64,000 nt of DNA, taken from assembly GCA_025558095.1 (NCBI GenBank), contig JAIVFI010000016.1:62001-126000 (forward strand), written 5' to 3'. The notes beneath the pieces are model-generated. The model was not told the DNA's origin. It saw only the letters and a program-made list of their open reading frames with translations, and did no database searches. Origin of the DNA: Hyaloraphidium curvatum SAG 235-1. Its lineage: Eukaryota > Fungi > Monoblepharomycota. Within the stretch, counting starts at the first letter, position 1; each line of letters opens with the position of its first letter. Position numbers and translations under genes: made by a program. Positions 45,705 to 55,631 of this stretch are shown here, one piece after another.

Positions 45705-46135
45705 TGTTGGGAGGCAGGGGAGGACGGGTTGGTGGACGGGTGGGAGGGCGCGGGGATTGGGGAAGAAGCGGGGAAGGGGGTTGACGGTTGGGCACGGGAC
45801 GGCGGCATCGTCGGTCCGGATCTCTCGACCTTGGAGGCCCGTGGGTGATCCAGGCGTCAACACTCCGGAAACGGACTTCATGAGGTGCTGGAATCTGCTT
45901 TCAGGGCAATCCGGGGCGCCGTGTGCCACGGTTCCCGGGTCGTGCGACGAACGAGACGCCCGGCGCAAGACATCCGGCTTCTCGGAGAGTGCAACCAGGC
46001 CCGCAAATCGACCGGATCTTCTCAGAGCGCGAACAAACAGATATCCTTGGCGAGTGATTTACATAGGGTATGGAAGGGTACGGGTATCAGCAAAGCAGCT
46101 CAAGGGTAGTAACGCGGCTTGGCCTTCGCTGCCAC

Positions 46136-46922
46136 TCAGAACGTCGCCCCCTTGAGCACCTTCCCCTCCTTCCCCGCCCACATCTTTGGCGGCGCCCCCT
46201 GCCCCTCTAGGTTCTTTGGCAGCTCCCCCACGACGTCGCCGCGGAACTGCGCGAGCAGCCCGAGCTCGGCGAGCATCTCGGCGCCGAACACGCAGATGGA
46301 GCGCTGCCACGGGTGCACAAAGACGCCGTTCTTGTAGTCCGAGGTGGTGAAGAGGGTGTAGTCGCCTGGAAGTGAGGCGGCGTGAGCCGAGAGGACGGCA
46401 GGATGACGGAAGGCGAGGCGACCAACCGTCAGGGACCGCCGACCTCTCCCAGCTCTCGTACGACATCTTCTTGGCGTCGATGATGTACCCCTCGTGGTAC
46501 GGATCCGTGCAGTACACCGCCAGCGGCTTCTTGGCCGCCCCGCAGACGGCCTTGAGCGCCTGCGCCAGCCTGCGGTGCCAGTCCACGCACAGATCCACCC
46601 TGGCCTGCTCCGAGAACCCGTCGAGGGGCAGCAACATCGCCGCCGCCGAGAGCACCAGGAACGGGCCCGGCGGCCTGACGGCGGGCGCGTCCTTCCCCCC
46701 CGCGTTGGCGAACGCGAAGCGGTGCTTGAACTCGCGGAAGGCCTCGGTCTCCTGCGCCTCGGTCATTTTGCGCCAGCCGGGGGAGGAGGTGACGAGGTGC
46801 GGCGCGGTTTCGTCGTCGGAGAAGAGCTCGTCCTCGCCCTCGTCGGCGCCGTCGCGGCCGGCGGTCATGACCCACGGCGACTTGAGGTCCGTCGAGTGCC
46901 AGAAGCGCACGGGGCGGGCCAT
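46136..46922 (-). CDS. DUF2716-like protein
   Basis: YCTDPYHEGY..AVPDG|DYTLFTTSDYKNGVFVHPWQRSICVFGAEML fits the DUF2716 pattern (DWxHxxY..PDGDY..F...D...G.FGHPW..ICVFG). One intron. Confidence 0.65.
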
Positions 46923-47222: not shown

Positions 47223-48582
47223 ATGAGCGCGCCGGCCGCCGCCGCCGCGCCTTTGTGGTTCGCGTGCGCCGCGTGCCGCCGCCCCGTTCTGCCCGCCGCC
47301 GACCCCGTCGTCTTCCTCGCCGCCAACCGCCCCGCGTGCCCGCACGTCGCGTGCCGCGGCTGCGCGTCCCCGGCGGGCAATAAGCGCCGGCTGGACCAGG
47401 CGTGCCCCGCCCCGGGCTGCGGCGCAGAGTGGGACGCGCTGGGGCAGCTGAGGGACCAGGCGTTCGCGTGGTCGGTGTACCTGGACTCGGTGGTGGACTG
47501 CCCTTCCGGCTGCGGGACGAAAGAGAGGGTGGCACAGCTGGAGGCGCACAGAAGGCGGTGCGCGGGGAAAATGTGTCCGGGGTGCGGGTACAGGAGTGGG
47601 TGGGGGGCCGATCCCGCGGACGCGGACGTGGGTTGCAAGCGGCCCCTCGTCCGCGTAGCCGACTTGCTCACCCCGTCCGCCTTCCAGCGCCACGTGGAAG
47701 CGTGCCCGGACGTCCCCATCGAGTGCGCGAACCCGGGTTGCGGCGCAAAAGTGCCCCGGCGCCTCGCACCGGAGCACCAATCCTCGTGCCCCAAGCGGAT
47801 CGTCACATGCCCCTTTTCGCTGTGCACGCACCAGGTACTTCTGCTCCCTGGATTGTGCTTCGTGCGCCTTCTGATTGCATCTTTCGCACCTTCCCGAACA
47901 GTGCACCGCGGATACCCTCAAGTGCCACACCGACGCCTCGCAGGAGGAGCACCACAACCTCGCCGCCGCCGCCCTCTCGGACCTCCGGCAGGAGCTCACC
48001 GCGCAGCTCCAGGAGGCCGAAGCGCTGCAGCGCGAGCGCATGGCCGCCGCGTGCTCGCAGGTGGTCCGCATCCTCGTCGGCACCGAGGAGACGGGGCTGC
48101 CCCCCGCGCCGCTGCCGACCGAGTGCAAGCCCGCGAGCAAGACCACCGAGAGCGGGACAAAGTACATGTCGGCGCCGTTCGTCTTTTCCGGGGTGCGGTT
48201 CACGCTCATGGCCAAGTTCGACGACGTGCGGGACACGTACGCGGTCTTCATCCGGCTCGGCCCCGGAGGCAGGCACGCCTGGGCAGAGGTCAAGTGGTCC
48301 TTCTGCTTCGTCAACCCCCTCGCGGGCGGCGGCACGCGGCGGGAGCAGCGCGCGCTGCTGGCCAACGACGAGAAGGGGGTGGGGTTCCTGACCATCGCCA
48401 ACAAGGCGCAGGTGCTGGATCCCGCCGAGGGGTTCCTGGAGGAGATAAAGGGGCTCAAGTACCTGGTGTTCAGGGTGTCGATGTACGTCAAGGACGCGGT
48501 GCTGGAGGTGGATGCGCGCGGGGATACGAGGAGGACGAAGACGCTCAAGGACGAGGCGGAGTGGCCCGAGGCGCCGTTTTGA
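47223..48582 (+). CDS. TRAF-like protein: RING-like + TRAF zinc fingers + coiled coil + MATH domain
   Basis: CAAC..CPHVACRGC..CPAPGC RING; zinc fingers CPSGC..H..C, CANPGC..HQSSC, CPFSLC..H; coiled coil; MATH strands SAPFVFSGVRFTL, YAVFIRL, VKWSFCFVN, GVGF, GFL..LVFRVSM. Intron 47835-47901. Confidence 0.82.
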
Positions 48583-48683: not shown

Positions 48684-51600
48684 TCAGTTCCCGAGCCACT
48701 TCCAGATGTATTTCGCCGCCTGCACGAGGGTGCTTTTGCCATGCAGCGCGACAGTCACCTGGCCTCCGGCCCCCGCGCTGAGGAACGGCTGCGTCTTTGC
48801 CGGGATCAAGATCCGGGCGGACACGTATGCCGTTCCGGGGAGGGTCCTTGTCCCGGCATCGGAGATTTCGGCGACCGTTGTGGAAACCCTGCGGATAACG
48901 GCATCAGATCGAGGCGATGGCCGTGCGGCCCGACCCGCTCAAGCTCACGTAAGGTCGGCCGAGAGTCCGGTCCATTTCTCCACGGCCTTGGGCACCCCGA
49001 CGCTGAATACGGGCACCGTCCGTACCTGCGCCGAAGCCCCCTTGGCCGAGTCCACGCCCGCGCAGCTGTTGGCCGCGCACGCCTCCGCGAAGCCGGACCA
49101 GCGCGCGTCGGGGTCCCATGCGGCCCCGACGTTGACCGAGGCGAGGTTGACGTCGAGGAGGGCGGCCTCGCCGGTTCCCACCGAGATGCCGGCGCTCGCG
49201 TGGGCGCCGACGTAGACGCCTTGCACGAGGGAAGGCTTCCCGGACCGGTCCGACGCATCGGGCAGGGGGCCGCACTCCCCTGAAGTCGGAGCTCCAGCGG
49301 CTACGGCAGCTCCCGGAGTCGGCAGCTTGTCGGATCCGTCCGATCCAACCGGTGCTTCCGGTCCTGCATGCGTGGCCTGCGCTTGTGGCTTGCCGTACCC
49401 TCTCGGCTGGGCCTCCGTGCGAGTACTCTTCGCGGGAGCCGGATCCTCGGTCATCCTCCTTGGCTGGGCGTCGTCCGCAGATGGAGCTTCAGATCGGGAG
49501 GCAGGCTCTCGGCCCTCGTCCCCAGCACCATCCCCGCCTGTCTCCGAACTAGATCCTCGAGCCGATCCAGGGGGTGATCCCGTCCCGCCCCCGTCCCCGT
49601 CCCCGGAGGCTGCCATCTTCCACTGGCGGCCCATGTTCGTGCCCGCCGCATAGATGGCCCCCAGCCCGCCGTACAGTGCGCCGTTGATCGCGGCCTGGCC
49701 GATGTCGTCACCCAGCAGCGCGGCGCCTGCCGCCCCCCCCAGGGTGCTCTGGACCGTCTTGTACGCCGTGTCCAGAGCGACACCTCCCACGTCGATGGGA
49801 GCCGAGGGCGGCGGAGTGGGCGACGGCACCACCGCCGACGAGATCTGTGAGACTGCGCCGCCCGCGGCGCCGACCACGAGGCCACCGACCATGGCCTTGC
49901 CGACGCCATCCATCAACGGCCGTCCCTCGACGGCGTTGATCGCCATCGTCGATGCTCCCGCGGAGAGCGAAGCGCTGGCGGCCGCGGAGCCGACGTCCAC
50001 GGCGATCTTGGCCACCCCCTGCACGGATCCCGCCAGCGCCGACACGCCGGCACCCACGGCGGCGCCGATCCCGGCCCCGACGAGCCCCGCGGCAACCCCG
50101 ATCGCGCCGACCTTGAGGAACTCGCCCCATTCCATCCCGCCGTCGCTCAGCGCGGTCCTGACGGTCATCCCGATCCCCGCGGACACCACCGCGCCCCCCA
50201 CGACCGCCGCCAACCCCGCGGTGCACACGCACAGCGCGACGCCGGCGAGGCTGACAGCGACCCCGACGGCGATCTGCACCAGCTTGCGCCACCACGGCCT
50301 GCGGGCTTCCTGCAGCCCCTTGTCGGCGGCGGCGAGGGCGGCGTCCGCGGCCCGGATCCGGCCGGCGATCGCCTCGAGCTCCGCCCCGCCGGCAACGAGC
50401 TGCTCCCGGGCGTGCGCGTAGAGCCCGTCGATCTCCCCGGCCGCCGCGGCCGCGACCTCCCCGTACCTGCGGTCCGACTCGGCCAGCGCCACGGCGAGGT
50501 CCCGCCCCATGCCCTCCCGTGCATCCCGCGCGGCCCCGGCGATCCCCCGAGCGCCGGCATCGAACGCCGCCGAGAGCTCCCCGGTCAGCTCGGCGCCTAC
50601 CTCGCGGATGCGCGCCGCGCAGGCCGCCATCTGGTCGACGCGGGCCGAGGCCATGGCTTCCGCCATGCTCTCGTAGTCGGCCTTGCGGGTCCCGGCGATC
50701 TCGATCCCATGCACGGCCTGCGAGACCCATTCGGCCTGCTGCCGGACGAAGGCCACCAGGGTCTCGGCGGCGTCGTCGCCCGCGGCTTCGAGGCGGAACG
50801 TTTTCTCCCAGATGGCGATCCTCTCGGCCACGAACTCGACCGTCGCATCCCGCGTCCGCAGCACCGCGTCGACGACGATCGATTGCCAGAGCCGCTGCGC
50901 CAGCGACTCGTCGGCCGCGGTCGCCGCCGCCGCGCACCGCCTGCGCACGGCGGAGAAGGCCCGGTTGGCCGCACGGTCGAGCCTGCGGAAGCACGCCGCG
51001 GTATTCTCCGCGTCCAGCAGGACGAACGGCGGCGCGGAAAGCTCCCCGCGCAGGCCTCGGTGCGCCGCGGCGACGGCGAGGGTGTGCGCGGCGAACAGTT
51101 CCGCCGGGGTCGGGATGCGCCCCCCCGCCGCAGCCCCGGCGAGGGCGGCGGGCAGGTCCCACGATCCGAGGCGCTCCTTCAGCTCGGCGGCGTAGACTTG
51201 GCCCGCGGCACGGGCGGCGCCGTGGGCGGCATCGACCGCGGCCGCACGCTGCAGGTCGTACGCGCTCGGGAAGCGGTCGCCTTCGGCATCGGCGAGCCGA
51301 GCCAGGCGGCGGACGTATGGCGCGGGCTCGAAGGGCGCAAAGGCGGGGTCGCAGATGGGGGAGCAGAGTGCGGCGGCCAGCTCGTTGGCGAGCTCAGGGG
51401 CCGATCCCGCATGCGGCCAGACGGCGAAAGAGGCATGGGAGAACAAGGTCTGCCGGTACGGAGTGCGAAACGGCGCGAGTCAGCTGCTCGTGCTTGCTGG
51501 GAGCGCAGCTTTGTAAACGGTGCCGCACCTTCACGCTCTCCTGGTTCCTCCGCAGCACCGTGTCGCCCGCCTGCGCAGCGAGGGCGTCCGCCTGTGCCCG

Positions 51601-52164
51601 ATCGGCCACGCCGGCAAAGTGGACGACGTGCGCCGCGGGCTTGAAGGCCGAGCCGAAGGCGGCAACAAGGGATCCGCTCGCGGCGGCGGGGGCGAGCACC
51701 TCCGAGAGCCACGCCGGGACGGCCGACGGCGCGTTCTCCGCGGCGACGACCACGTGGGCGCCGGCGAGGCAGCCGCGCGGCAGGGCGCCGGGGAACACCG
51801 AGAACACCAGCCAGCGCGGCCGCGGGGCCGGCAGGAGGATGCAGAACGCGTGGGGCTGCGAGGCCGCGCGCAGGTCGGCCGGGGCCGCGAGGCGTGAACC
51901 GTCGCCCAGCAGCGCCGTGGCGAGGCGGCCGGCGACGTCCCACACCTGATGGCACGCGGTGCCTGTGATGGCAATGGGGACCACGGGAACGTTCAGCAGC
52001 GCGATGGCCGGCAGCCCCTCGGCCGTGCGGTCACTCAAAAGTACCGGCACCACGCGGGCACGCCGCTGCCCCGCGACGGCGAACTGCGGCAGCGGCTCCA
52101 GCCCGGCGGGGACCGGCGCCGCGGCGTGGGAGGCATCGGCGGCGATCGGCTCGACGGCGGCCAT
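48684..52164 (-). CDS. Degenerate GBP-like (pseudo)GTPase + helical/coiled-coil region + glycine-zipper hydrophobic region + beta-rich C-terminal domain (~1113 aa)
   Basis: Exons 52164-51529, 51449-48949 and 48888-48684 (GT-AG introns of 79 and 60 nt) splice in-frame. N-terminal AIALLNVPVVPIAITG lacks GKS/T. YVRRL..FPSAYDL..AAGQVYAAEL..PTPAELFAAH resembles the GBP middle domain. PWWRKLVQIAVGVAVSLAGVAL.. begins a long G/A/V zipper. Confidence 0.65.
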
Positions 52165-52187
52165 TCTGTCGTGGATGCCTCGCCTGC

Positions 52188-52240
52188 GCAGCTGATCGCA
52201 GCCGAATGCCCGCTGATCGCAGCCGAATGCGATCAGCTGC
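52188..52240. promoter_or_regulatory. Direct + inverted repeat in the 248-bp bidirectional promoter of the GBP-like pair
   Basis: GCTGATCGCAGCCGAATGC at 52191-52209 and 52212-52230; perfect 13-bp inverted repeat GCAGCTGATCGCA (52188-52200) / TGCGATCAGCTGC (52228-52240). Confidence 0.45.
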
Positions 52241-52412
52241 TTACGAAACTCATGGTGGCGCGGCGCGTTGAGATTGAGCTGATCGGATTGAGATCCTGGG
52301 AGGTCACAGGGCGTCAGCCAGGTTACTTGAGACCCGCGCCGCCCCGCAATCCCGCAACGTCAAACTCCAATTGTCGGCAGCAGAACCGCAAGCAGGCACC
52401 TCCGGCGTAACG

Positions 52413-55400
52413 ATGCGTGAGTGTCCGCCGCCGCACCGCGGCCGCCCCGCGCTGACGCCCTCCGCAGCCTTCGCTCTGTTCCCGCGGCCCGACATTCTCG
52501 TTGTCGCCGTCGTCCAGCGGGGCGGCGACACGTACACAATCGCAGAGTGGCGCCGGCCCGGCGCTCCGGCGTTCGCCGACATCGACGCCGCCGTCGCGAC
52601 CTCGTGGCGCCCCGCTGCGAGCGGCATCTCGCGCATGGTCTTTGGCGGCCACAGCTTCGACTCGCTCCACGCCGCGCTGCCGCCCGCCGAAGATGGCCAG
52701 CCCCAAGTGCACGTCATGGGCATCCGTCGTGAAGGCATCGAGGTCACCATGGCGTACACGGCGACGTTCTGGCGGCTCCACACCGTGCCGCTGCCCGCCG
52801 TGCCCGCGGCCATCCTGCTGATGGCCGAGGAGACCGCCTCGGCTTCGCCCTCGTCTCTGGGGGCCAACTTCTACCAAGTCATGATCGGCAACTTCGTTGG
52901 GGCCTTCAGGGTCGGCAGCGAGGTCCTGGATCTCGCCCGCGCCCTGAACCCGCCGCGGCGGGACGCCCTGCGCGTGCACGCCCGCGCCATCGGCATCGTC
53001 GACGAGGGCCACCCCAGGCCCGACGACCTGCGGCCGATCCTGGTGCCGAACCAAGCCGGCCTCGAGGCCCTGCGCGGCATGGCCGAGGAGAACGCCTCGG
53101 CCGACCGGCCCGTGCACCCGCAGGCCATCATCGGCAGCGTGCGCAGGGGCAAGACCACGCTCAACAACATCATGCTCCGCATTGCTAACGAGGTCAGCAC
53201 CGACAGGCTCGGCACCACCGAGTACGGCTACTACGACTCGGCGTCGGTGCCCTTTTTCTTCCTCGCCTCCAACGCCGGGAGGTCCGTCACCAGGGGCGTC
53301 CAGGCCTACGCGATCGAGACCTTGAACAGGACCGTGCTCCTCCTGGACTTCGAGGGGTTCGACAGCGAGGCTCCTCACGCCGAGATCGGGGAGCCCGGCC
53401 CGTCGTCCGCCGCGGGCCCCTCCAACGCGCCCGCGCCGACCTGGAACCACGCCAACCGCCGCGAGTTCGACACCCGCCTCTACGCCCTCGCCATCGCCAT
53501 CGCACCCACCGTCGTCTTCAACGCCTCGGGGATCGTGTCGGCCTCGCTCACGCTGGACAGCATCGCGGCTCTGCACGGGTCGGCCCTAAACCGGCGCATC
53601 GTGCCGCCCGGGGGCCGCGGCTCGTCGTTCCTGATGATGGTGATGCAGAACCACCCCGACGTCGGGCACGACTCGAGGCAGGACTTTGGCGCCTGGCTGG
53701 ACCGCAACGGCCGCAGGGCCGTCTTCGCCACCACCTTTGGCGACTACGCCGTGGTCAACGTGCCCGGGCCCGAGATCGACCCCGCCCTCGAGGTGTCCCG
53801 CATGCCGGCGGAGCGGCTGCGCAGGAACGGTTACCTGGGCCAGATCATGCGGGCCTGGGAAACCGCAAGGGAGAACGGGCAGCCCGTGCCGGGCGACCTG
53901 GTCAGGCTGATCGAGGTGGGGTCCCGCGTACGTGTTTGTGGGGTACCGCGGCTCATCCAATGTCGCACGCAGGACTCGACGGCGGCCATCAACGCCACCG
54001 CAAACCTCAACTCGTACGGGCAGGACGACTACCAGACCACGCAGCAGATCCGGAGCCACGCCGCGGCGACGGTCGCGGCGCACCGCGCCGCCCTGGAGGC
54101 CAGGCGCCAGGCCGTCGATGCCACGGCCGACGTCTCGCAGCTCGAGACGGCGCAGGAGCTCAGCGCCTTCCTGCACACGGAGCGGCACCGCGCGATCGGG
54201 AACTTCCGCGCCGTCCCCAACCTCTCGGATCAGCACAGGGCCATGCACGGCAACGCCATCGAGCAGGAAGAGCGCCTCATGTGCGAGCAGGTCGACGCCG
54301 CGGCGGACCTCCTCCTGGCCACCTACGCAGCCGCCTCGCGCCGCCACCTGGCCGCCCTCGTCGACGGGATCCGCAACGCCGTGCCGCCCGCAGCCGACTA
54401 CGTGCCCAGCGCCGCGAACCCGACCGCGGATCCCGCCCGGTTCCGCCAGTGGATCGACGAGCGGCTGCGGAGCTTCGACGGCACGGCAAGGGGGCCCAAC
54501 GACGCCGTCACCGCGGCCAGGGAGCGGCTCGCCAGCGACCTCGGGTCGTTCCTGCGGCTGTACCAGCAGCAGGCGGAGGATTTCCGCCGGGCCGAGCGGC
54601 GCGCGCGGGAGCAGGAGGAGCGGACGCGCCAGGAGCAGGAGCGCATGAGGGCCGAGCGCGAGCGCATGGAGGGGGACCTCAGGGCGCAGGCAGAGCTGCG
54701 GCAGCGGCAGATGGAAGAGCAGGCCCGGCAGGCCGCGGAGGAGCTCGGCCGGGAGAGGGAGGCGGCGGCAGCTCAGCTCCGCGAGGTCAATGCCAGGCAC
54801 ATGCAGGACCTTCGGGATACTCAGGCCGAGATGAGGTCCCAGGCGCAGCAGCAGCTCGAGGAAACCGTGGCCCCGCTCAACCGACGCATCCAGGAGCTTT
54901 CCGCCGACGTCGCACGGGAGACTGCGCGGGCCAACGACCTGCAGCGCCAGGCTGACGAGCTCAGGAACAGGGGCGGATGCTTCGCCTCGTCGTGCACGGC
55001 CGAGCTCGAGGATGGCCGCCGCATCGGCGTGGCCGAACTGCGGGTCGGGGACCACGTGCGCGTTGCGCGCGGGGGATTCGAGCCCGTCGTTGGCTTCTAC
55101 GACGCCGATACCGACGCGGAGCCGTGCTTCCTCGAGGTTGCTTTCGGGCTGCAGGACGGCCAGTCGGGCATGATCACGCTCACTCACAACCACATGGTCA
55201 TCGCCAGCAACGGCAGCGGCCCGGCCTTGCCCATGCAGGCGCACAAGCTGATCCCCGGCACCAGCTTCCTCATGCTCGCGGGGAGCATGGACCCTGTTCC
55301 CGTGGTCTCGGTGCGCGCCTCAGATGTCCGCGGAGCCTACTCCCCCGCCACCCCCGGCGGCACCATTGCCGTCTCGGACCGCGGCCCGGCGGTCGTGGCC

Positions 55401-55631
55401 TCCTGCTACGCTAAGCCCTCGACGTTCAGCAAGCTGGCCTGGGACGACGCCGCGGTGGATGCGGCACTGCACGGGGCGTCGTGGTTGCTGCGCATGTGGT
55501 GGGCCGCATCCGGGTTGGCGGGCTGGCCGTTGGCGGGAGGTGCGGCGGGAACTGGCAAGGCTGGGCCGGGAGTTCGGGCCCTCAAGGCCGCAGCAGCGGC
55601 AGCGTTCTCCTGGATTGGGCTGCTGGACTGA
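52413..55631 (+). CDS. GBP/atlastin-family GTPase + coiled coil + Hedgehog-type Hint (Hog) domain
   Basis: G1 IIGSVRRGKTT (53133-53156), G2 RSVTRGV, G3 LLLDFEG, FDTRLYALAIAIAPTVVFN; E/R/Q coiled coil; GG|CFA (Cys at 54978), LRVGDHV, GFYDAD, LTHNHM, GAYSPATPGGTIAV..VASCYA, SRR-like ALHGASWLLRMWW. In-frame introns 52417-52467 and 53916-53972. Confidence 0.88.
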   Translation: MRECPPPHRGRPALTPSAAFALFPRPDILVVAVVQRGGDTYTIAEWRRPGAPAFADIDAAVATSWRPAASGISRMVFGGHSFDSLHAALPPAEDGQPQVHVMGIRREGIEVTMAYTATFWRLHTVPLPAVPAAILLMAEETASASPSSLGANFYQVMIGNFVGAFRVGSEVLDLARALNPPRRDALRVHARAIGIVDEGHPRPDDLRPILVPNQAGLEALRGMAEENASADRPVHPQAIIGSVRRGKTTLNNIMLRIANEVSTDRLGTTEYGYYDSASVPFFFLASNAGRSVTRGVQAYAIETLNRTVLLLDFEGFDSEAPHAEIGEPGPSSAAGPSNAPAPTWNHANRREFDTRLYALAIAIAPTVVFNASGIVSASLTLDSIAALHGSALNRRIVPPGGRGSSFLMMVMQNHPDVGHDSRQDFGAWLDRNGRRAVFATTFGDYAVVNVPGPEIDPALEVSRMPAERLRRNGYLGQIMRAWETARENGQPVPGDLVRLIEVGSRVRVCGVPRLIQCRTQDSTAAINATANLNSYGQDDYQTTQQIRSHAAATVAAHRAALEARRQAVDATADVSQLETAQELSAFLHTERHRAIGNFRAVPNLSDQHRAMHGNAIEQEERLMCEQVDAAADLLLATYAAASRRHLAALVDGIRNAVPPAADYVPSAANPTADPARFRQWIDERLRSFDGTARGPNDAVTAARERLASDLGSFLRLYQQQAEDFRRAERRAREQEERTRQEQERMRAERERMEGDLRAQAELRQRQMEEQARQAAEELGREREAAAAQLREVNARHMQDLRDTQAEMRSQAQQQLEETVAPLNRRIQELSADVARETARANDLQRQADELRNRGGCFASSCTAELEDGRRIGVAELRVGDHVRVARGGFEPVVGFYDADTDAEPCFLEVAFGLQDGQSGMITLTHNHMVIASNGSGPALPMQAHKLIPGTSFLMLAGSMDPVPVVSVRASDVRGAYSPATPGGTIAVSDRGPAVVASCYAKPSTFSKLAWDDAAVDAALHGASWLLRMWWAASGLAGWPLAGGAAGTGKAGPGVRALKAAAAAAFSWIGLLD

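Follow-up and report, generated by a model that had tools for sequence, protein, structure and literature searches.

A predicted GBP/RHD3-class GTPase-Hog fusion gene and a glycine-zipper membrane protein gene arranged head to head in Hyaloraphidium curvatum

Do two long genes that diverge from one short spacer also work together, and what might a hedgehog-type autoprocessing domain contribute on one of their products? This question is raised by a locus of the fungus Hyaloraphidium curvatum SAG 235-1, whose assembly comprises 31.9 Mb in 55 contigs. The locus lies on contig C16, within a stretch of 64,000 nucleotides (C16:62001-126000; here, the window, to which unprefixed positions refer) with a G+C content of 61 to 77%; short GT..AG introns identify the host as a eukaryote. 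Sequence comparison indicates that the product of the plus-strand gene (52410-55631) is a GBP/RHD3-class GTPase ending in a Hog domain that appears competent and that the product of the minus-strand gene (52164-48684) has a glycine-zipper transmembrane block, which is conserved. We favor, with a probability of about 0.45, the explanation that the pair forms a conserved module of two genes, restricted to one lineage, whose products act at a membrane. The divergent arrangement described in an initial annotation stands, and the spacer, given there as 248 bp, was computed as 245 bp (52165-52409).

The evidence for a module comes from a second locus. An exhaustive phmmer search with residues 1 to 740 of the plus-strand product against 1.84 billion representative sequences returned only a fragment of the same gene and one other protein, P0002 (511 residues), which lies on a 16.7-kb Logan contig (L004; G+C content, 55%). 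On L004, both genes are present and likewise diverge, here from a spacer of 164 bp. Adjacency elsewhere had been named beforehand as a check on the pairing, and the only other genome with either gene thus has both, in the same orientation. Amino acid identity between the loci is 40% for the N-terminal half and 33% for the C-terminal half of the plus-strand product and 37% and 29% for exons 1 and 2, respectively, of the minus-strand gene. Intron positions are also common to both loci, in the plus-strand gene (57 nt in the window and 53 nt in L004) and at intron 1 of the minus-strand gene (79 and 66 nt). Three genes on the right flank of L004 are collinear with ∼644 to 651 kb of H. curvatum contig C18 (31 to 61% identity), while the pair itself is on C16, and the window genes outside the pair have no match in L004. 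The L004 flank thus maps to another contig than the pair, which has remained intact through a rearrangement. Its own identity of 27 to 40% is at the low end of the range for these three neighbors, two of which have 41 to 61% and the third 31%.

Each gene is single copy in the H. curvatum genome, and no third locus of the pair was found in any search. A word-based protein search with residues 1 to 850 of the plus-strand product, which was swamped by coiled-coil words, gave no relative beyond itself and L004, as did word-based searches with the L004 minus-strand protein and with an alignment of the plus-strand N-terminal half, which are less sensitive than phmmer. Scans of JGI metagenomes with both alignments and scans of IMG/VR were likewise blank beyond the two loci, and an ESM Atlas search with the minus-strand helical region gave no usable match.

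The open reading frame (ORF) of the plus-strand gene runs from an ATG at 52410 to a stop codon at 55629-55631 (1073 codons). In the predicted protein, which lacks a signal peptide and is read as cytosolic, a GBP/RHD3-class G domain stands behind an N-terminal domain and is followed by a helical stalk and then a coiled coil; the C-terminal part is a hedgehog-type Hint/Hog domain. The G1 to G3 motifs of the GBP/atlastin type noted in the initial annotation were confirmed in the G domain (53055-53915), where G1, the switch-I Thr, and G3 are intact and invariant in the ortholog. The P-loop (GxxxxGK[ST]; 53133-53156) is G-S-V-R-R-G-K-T at residues 242 to 249, in which the G, R-R-G-K, and the Thr after it are invariant in L004; the same holds for the switch-I motif T294-R-G (residues 294 to 296; 53289-53297) and the G3 motif D313-F-E-G (residues 313 to 316; 53346-53357), which align to the TKG and D-T/V-E-G of GBP2, GBP5, and the organism's own Sey1. 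The Pfam GBP family (PF02263) scored 15.3 bits on the window protein, below the cutoff of 21.1, and 38.9 bits (E = 7e-10) on the L004 ortholog (40% identity), above threshold. When a two-sequence profile was compared with the Protein Data Bank (PDB), GBP2, GBP5, GBP1, and atlastin ranked at the top, with three collinear motif blocks, and ESM language-model features placed the domain at 0.90 to GBP/RHD3 clusters. A GBP-type G4 (T/A-L/V-R-D) was not found in the G domain, in which the corresponding strand ends in Q-N-H-P-D (Q-N-W-P-N in L004), and Pfam GBP_C was not detected on the protein.

The G domain also aligns motif for motif with Sey1 of H. curvatum. This gene (C18:361820-365269) is a canonical Sey1/RHD3-type gene split over several exons and was the sole PF02263 match in a genome family scan, which missed the plus-strand gene itself. 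As this canonical Sey1 is the only other GBP-class gene in the genome, the pair is not the housekeeping endoplasmic reticulum fusogen.

The assignment of the C-terminal region to the Hog class, already made in the initial annotation, was also upheld. The Hint module (54978-55412) extends from the putative catalytic Cys (codon 54978-54980), which is preceded by Gly-Gly, to an SCYA motif, and matches Pfam PF01079 at 66.7 bits (cutoff, 29.7; E = 2.9e-18); no other PF01079 match occurs in the H. curvatum genome. Among solved structures, it matches Drosophila hedgehog (6td6_B, E = 8.5e-6; 1at0, E = 1.8e-4), and its catalytic motifs, i.e., the G|CF cleavage site, TxxH, and SCYA, align in register with those of the Drosophila protein and are invariant in L004. 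The SCYA motif is followed by a region of ∼70 residues and the stop codon (55413-55631), with patches conserved in L004. By its position, this tail may be the counterpart of the sterol/adduct-recognition region of hedgehog (PMC7906309).

The remaining parts of the plus-strand product are less readily classified. The N-terminal domain (residues 1 to 215; 52410-53054) is 40% identical to that of L004 and has no match in Pfam. Its AlphaFold2 model has the order b-b-a-b-b-b-b-a-a at a mean predicted local distance difference test (pLDDT) score of 33.4, i.e., low confidence, and the top Foldseek rows for this model are longin/roadblock structures at nonsignificant E values of 0.04 to 0.3; a longin/roadblock-like domain is possible. 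The segment at 53916-53972 (57 nt, GT..AG) is probably an in-frame intron: it coincides with a 53-nt frame-breaking intron of L004, its 19 codons have no counterpart there, and its G+C content at third codon positions (GC3) is 63%, versus 90 to 93% in the flanking exons. Its removal would leave a product that is probably 1054 residues long. The helical stalk and the E/R/Q-rich coiled coil (53973-54977; coiled coil, ∼54561-54962) have 33% identity to L004 and gave only coiled-coil-type matches in PADLOC and Pfam.

The putative partner of this GTPase is encoded in three exons of 212, 834, and 68 codons on the minus strand. The exon model was built by eye from splice signals and from the ortholog, which supports intron 1 only. 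Exon 1 (51529-52164) encodes an alpha/beta N-domain of 212 residues, and intron 1 (51450-51528; 79 nt, GT..AG, phase 0) corresponds in position and phase to the 66-nt intron of L004. Exon 2 (51449-48949) encodes a helical region (its residues 1 to 385; 50295-51449), the glycine-zipper transmembrane block (residues 386 to 545; 49815-50294), and a lineage-specific tail (48949-49814), in which a low-complexity linker joins another Gly-rich stretch to a beta-rich tip. Intron 2 (48889-48948; 60 nt, GTGAGC..CAG), placed by eye, splits a codon after its second base, and exon 3 (48684-48888) encodes 68 residues and the stop codon, with a GC3 of 81%, no Pfam match, and no counterpart in L004. The protein thus has an alpha/beta N-domain of ∼210 residues, a helical region of ∼370 residues, the glycine-zipper block, and the tail. 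The exons were searched one by one, unjoined, and the ortholog was represented by protein P0003, which reads through the 66-nt in-frame intron. No exon matched Pfam, PADLOC, or PDB sequences, and the transmembrane block, the tail, and exon 3 had no Pfam match at E values of up to 10.

The long Gly/Ala/Val zipper claimed for this protein was borne out as a conserved, Gly/Ala-rich transmembrane block, identified by hydropathy, composition, and comparison with L004. It contains 44 small-xxx-small motifs in 166 residues, seven GxxxG motifs (G, 18%; A, 21%; V, 17%), and two hydropathy segments, at exon 2 residues 388 to 431 and 444 to 474. The block is the best-conserved part of the C-terminal half, with many columns invariant in L004, including R-P-L-M-D-G-V. 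The ortholog ends shortly after this first glycine-zipper block, and the tail of the window protein has no counterpart in it. GC3 falls to 48 to 70% over exon 2 residues ∼615 to 735 and then returns to 92 to 98%, with the frame open throughout; the low-GC3 stretch (49240-49600, minus strand) may be a relaxed low-complexity linker or an unrecognized in-frame intron.

Whether the N-domain of this protein is a dead GTPase, as was proposed, is a question of ancestry. The proposed lack of GKS/T is confirmed, as GK[S/T] and DxxG are lacking in both species; the first strand is followed by a loop with the sequence T-G-T-A-C-H in the window and T-G-D-S-D-D in L004. If this is a G domain, the loss of GK[S/T] and DxxG would therefore leave it without usual nucleotide binding. 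The proposed alignment of the N terminus to the pre-P-loop strand of GBPs did not hold up: it is the best local hhalign match, yet 36 of 60 column shuffles equal it. No significant match of the N-domain to a G domain was found by sequence or profile in Pfam or the PDB, and the hhalign score of the N-domain against the plus-strand G domain equals those of shuffled controls.

The fold evidence comes from an AlphaFold2 model of the first 605 residues of the ortholog (mean pLDDT, 46.8). In this model, the N-domain elements run a1-b2-b3-a-b4-a-a-b5-a, with b1 before a1 read from the sequence rather than from DSSP, and from a1 onward this low-confidence order matches that of a Ras-like G domain. Foldseek ranked GBP5 first (E = 1.8e-3, 485 columns), a subthreshold match on a low-confidence model, followed by LeoA, Rnd1, a Campylobacter DLP pair, GBP1, EngB, Rho-family proteins, and Sey1p, mixed with Rossmann-type reductases. 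VIA-align placed residues 51 to 218 on Gtr1/Rag G domains (Z scores of 4 to 6 overall) and residues 297 to 423 on the middle domains of RNF112 and GBP1 (Z scores of 5 to 6), all below the reliability mark. In the helical region, helices are predicted, and only the last long helix exceeds a pLDDT of 70; the GBP-like middle domain proposed for this gene stands on the VIA-align scores of 5 to 6, obtained on a model with a pLDDT of 47. Foldseek also failed to recover the G domain of the plus-strand model, which served as a positive control; the AlphaFold2 models consequently have little power, and the fold matches are leads only.

Two accounts of this ancestry can be given, the second of which fits any functional reading of the pair. 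We lean slightly toward a degenerate G domain with a GBP-like stalk behind it, a reading to which the modeled order of elements, the subthreshold top rows (GBP5, LeoA, Rnd1, the DLP pair, and GBP1), and the subthreshold Z scores of 4 to 6 for the Gtr1/Rag G domains and the RNF112/GBP1 middle domains all point. The competing account, in which the N-domain is an unrelated alpha/beta fold that resembles the strand-loop-helix and beta-hairpin of GBPs by chance, falls a little short of even odds: hhalign scores do not exceed those of shuffled controls, no Pfam or PDB sequence matches, the domain (∼210 residues) is shorter than the G domain of GBPs, and Rossmann-type reductases are among the top Foldseek rows.

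The divergent spacer (52165-52409; no strand) is presumed to be a bidirectional promoter. Comparison of the window spacer with that of L004 revealed no convincing conserved motif. A 19-bp sequence occurs twice in tandem at ∼52191-52230, 2 bp apart, and is followed by a short inverted copy of the start of the sequence; this repeat is not kept in the L004 spacer. A scan of the spacer for bacterial promoters and terminators gave nothing and is irrelevant to a eukaryote.

We propose a membrane module because two orphan genes share one narrow distribution and, at both loci, diverge from a common spacer and agree in their intron positions. If the motifs of the Hog domain are functional, it would cleave the plus-strand precursor between Gly and Cys (Cys codon beginning at 54978), which would either attach a sterol or another lipid to the newly formed C terminus, as in hedgehog, or simply release the GTPase part. 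With an adduct, the fragment of ∼840 residues carrying the GTPase and coiled coil would become membrane anchored, and the adduct would have a role like that of the CaaX prenyl group of GBP1, GBP2, and GBP5. The shared spacer would drive both genes, and the anchored GTPase would act with the membrane-embedded partner, possibly a degenerate relative of its own G domain, in GTP-driven tethering, remodeling, or permeabilization of a membrane, as do paired bacterial dynamin-like proteins and atlastin/Sey1.

Several points weigh against this proposal. Only two genomes carry the pair, and these share microsynteny elsewhere, so that the adjacency counts as a single observation and may reflect a gene order inherited from a common ancestor. 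The two proteins have no detectable sequence similarity to each other, by BLASTP or by hhalign of the N-domains, which scored at chance; their helical regions scored 19.7 in hhalign against 13.3 ± 1.8 for column shuffles, at a probability of 0.6%, which may reflect helical periodicity. Both AlphaFold2 models are poor (pLDDT of 46.8 and 33.4), autoprocessing and lipidation are predicted from motifs only, and the G4 of the plus-strand G domain is neither the RD of the GBP type nor a clean NKxD.

The first and second of these points would be accounted for if the genes were functionally unrelated neighbors whose order was inherited in two rather close relatives, each with a compact genome, with a Hog-processed GBP-like GTPase and a membrane protein acting alone. 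Because the two genomes share other microsynteny (with protein identities of 44 to 61%), some adjacency is expected without selection, and the lack of similarity between the proteins agrees with independent functions. We nevertheless consider mere neighborhood rather unlikely, since both orphans are limited to the same two loci, synteny breaks right beside the pair while leaving it unsplit, and the spacer is short in both genomes (245 and 164 bp). A more specific function was suggested in the initial annotation, i.e., a sensor/executor pair for defense or cell death, in which the active, lipid-anchored GBP would direct a toxin-like, pore-forming pseudo-GTPase at a parasite or use it in nonself recognition. 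Glycine zippers occur in pore formers. Animal GBPs are immune GTPases, and roles in plant immunity are now reported; the distribution of the pair is narrow, and it diverges somewhat faster than two of its three neighbors. The third neighbor is equally divergent (31%), however, and no specific evidence for such a role emerged: both genes are single copy without family expansion, and neither Pfam nor PADLOC places a curated toxin, pore-former, death, or defense family on the minus-strand protein. The toxin-like domain claimed for that protein likewise matched no toxin family, and its C-terminal tip is missing from the ortholog. A defense or cell death pair is therefore improbable. Slightly less probable still is the complete two-component machine, in which a GBP-class GTPase, anchored through its Hog domain rather than by prenylation, drives a glycine-zipper pseudo-GTPase, which arose with it from one ancestral GBP-like gene through an inverted duplication, to remodel or perforate a target membrane in conflict with parasites or nonself.

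Beyond the pair, a gene at 47223-48582 (plus strand) is convergent with the 3′ end of the minus-strand gene and encodes a TRAF-type zinc finger (PF02176, E = 2e-8). Its frame changes near 47850-47875, probably at an intron; its C-terminal ORF has no Pfam match, a MATH domain was not confirmed, and the gene does not adjoin the pair in L004. An ORF at 46059-46922 (minus strand) has a subthreshold match to DUF2716 (18 bits; cutoff, 24) that is probably not meaningful. The three-gene block conserved between L004:11045-16714 and C18:644400-650900 includes one gene for a hybrid histidine kinase (HisKA, HATPase_c, and Response_reg domains); histidine kinase paralogs are very numerous in H. curvatum (64 exon-level matches).

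As the cargo of a Hog domain, a large, membrane-active GTPase of the GBP class would plausibly be lipidated by hedgehog-type autoprocessing, and the GBP/atlastin family would have a natural means of anchoring other than CaaX. Conserved pairing with a P-loop-less membrane protein would offer a two-protein system for studying how GTPases are coupled to membrane effectors and would extend the theme of an active GTPase with a degenerate partner to a new lineage. Should the pairing reflect inherited gene order only, an unusual single fusion protein would remain.

Among known systems, the atlastin/Sey1p/RHD3/mitofusin proteins parallel the minus-strand protein in layout, with an alpha/beta N-domain, a helical bundle, and transmembrane hairpins, at a similarity that is not significant; the minus-strand protein differs from atlastin, Sey1, and mitofusin in lacking a P-loop and DxxG, and here the GTPase and the membrane anchor are on two polypeptides. 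Campylobacter DLP1/DLP2 and LeoA/LeoBC resemble the pair in being encoded by adjacent genes for two large GTPase-like proteins, which form a membrane hetero-complex in those systems. Two bacterial dynamin-like structures (5oxf and 4aur) are among the weak fold matches of the minus-strand model. Unlike the window pair, to which they have no detectable sequence relation, the DLP1/DLP2 and LeoA/LeoBC systems are bacterial and co-directional, both of their proteins bind nucleotide, and they have no Hint domain.

The interferon-induced, CaaX-prenylated animal proteins GBP1, GBP2, and GBP5 share with the plus-strand protein the GB1/RHD3 motifs, a helical region behind them, and a device for lipid anchoring at the C terminus, which is putative here; the plus-strand protein has a Hog domain instead of a CaaX box, no RD-type G4, and an extra N-terminal domain. 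With the C-terminal autoprocessing domain of hedgehog it shares G|CF, TxxH, SCYA, and a tail of ∼70 residues at the SRR (sterol-recognition region) position, but it is predicted to process a cytosolic GTPase, where hedgehog carries a secreted signaling domain. We found no publication on a fusion between a GBP-class GTPase and a Hint domain. The nearest known protein is GmGIN1 of Glomus mosseae (PMC2362128), in which an AIG1/IAN-type GTPase without a signal peptide precedes a Hog domain. It is the one known example of a GTPase-Hog fusion, with another class of GTPase; with a GBP-class cargo, hedgehog-type autoprocessing would have a second, independent instance in the cytosol. Like GmGIN1, the plus-strand protein has a signal-peptide-less GTPase N terminal to a bona fide Hog domain, i.e., a cytosolic GTPase as Hog cargo; unlike GmGIN1, it has a G domain of the GBP/RHD3 class rather than AIG1/GIMAP, an additional domain at its N terminus, a long stalk with a coiled coil, and a conserved, divergently transcribed membrane protein partner.

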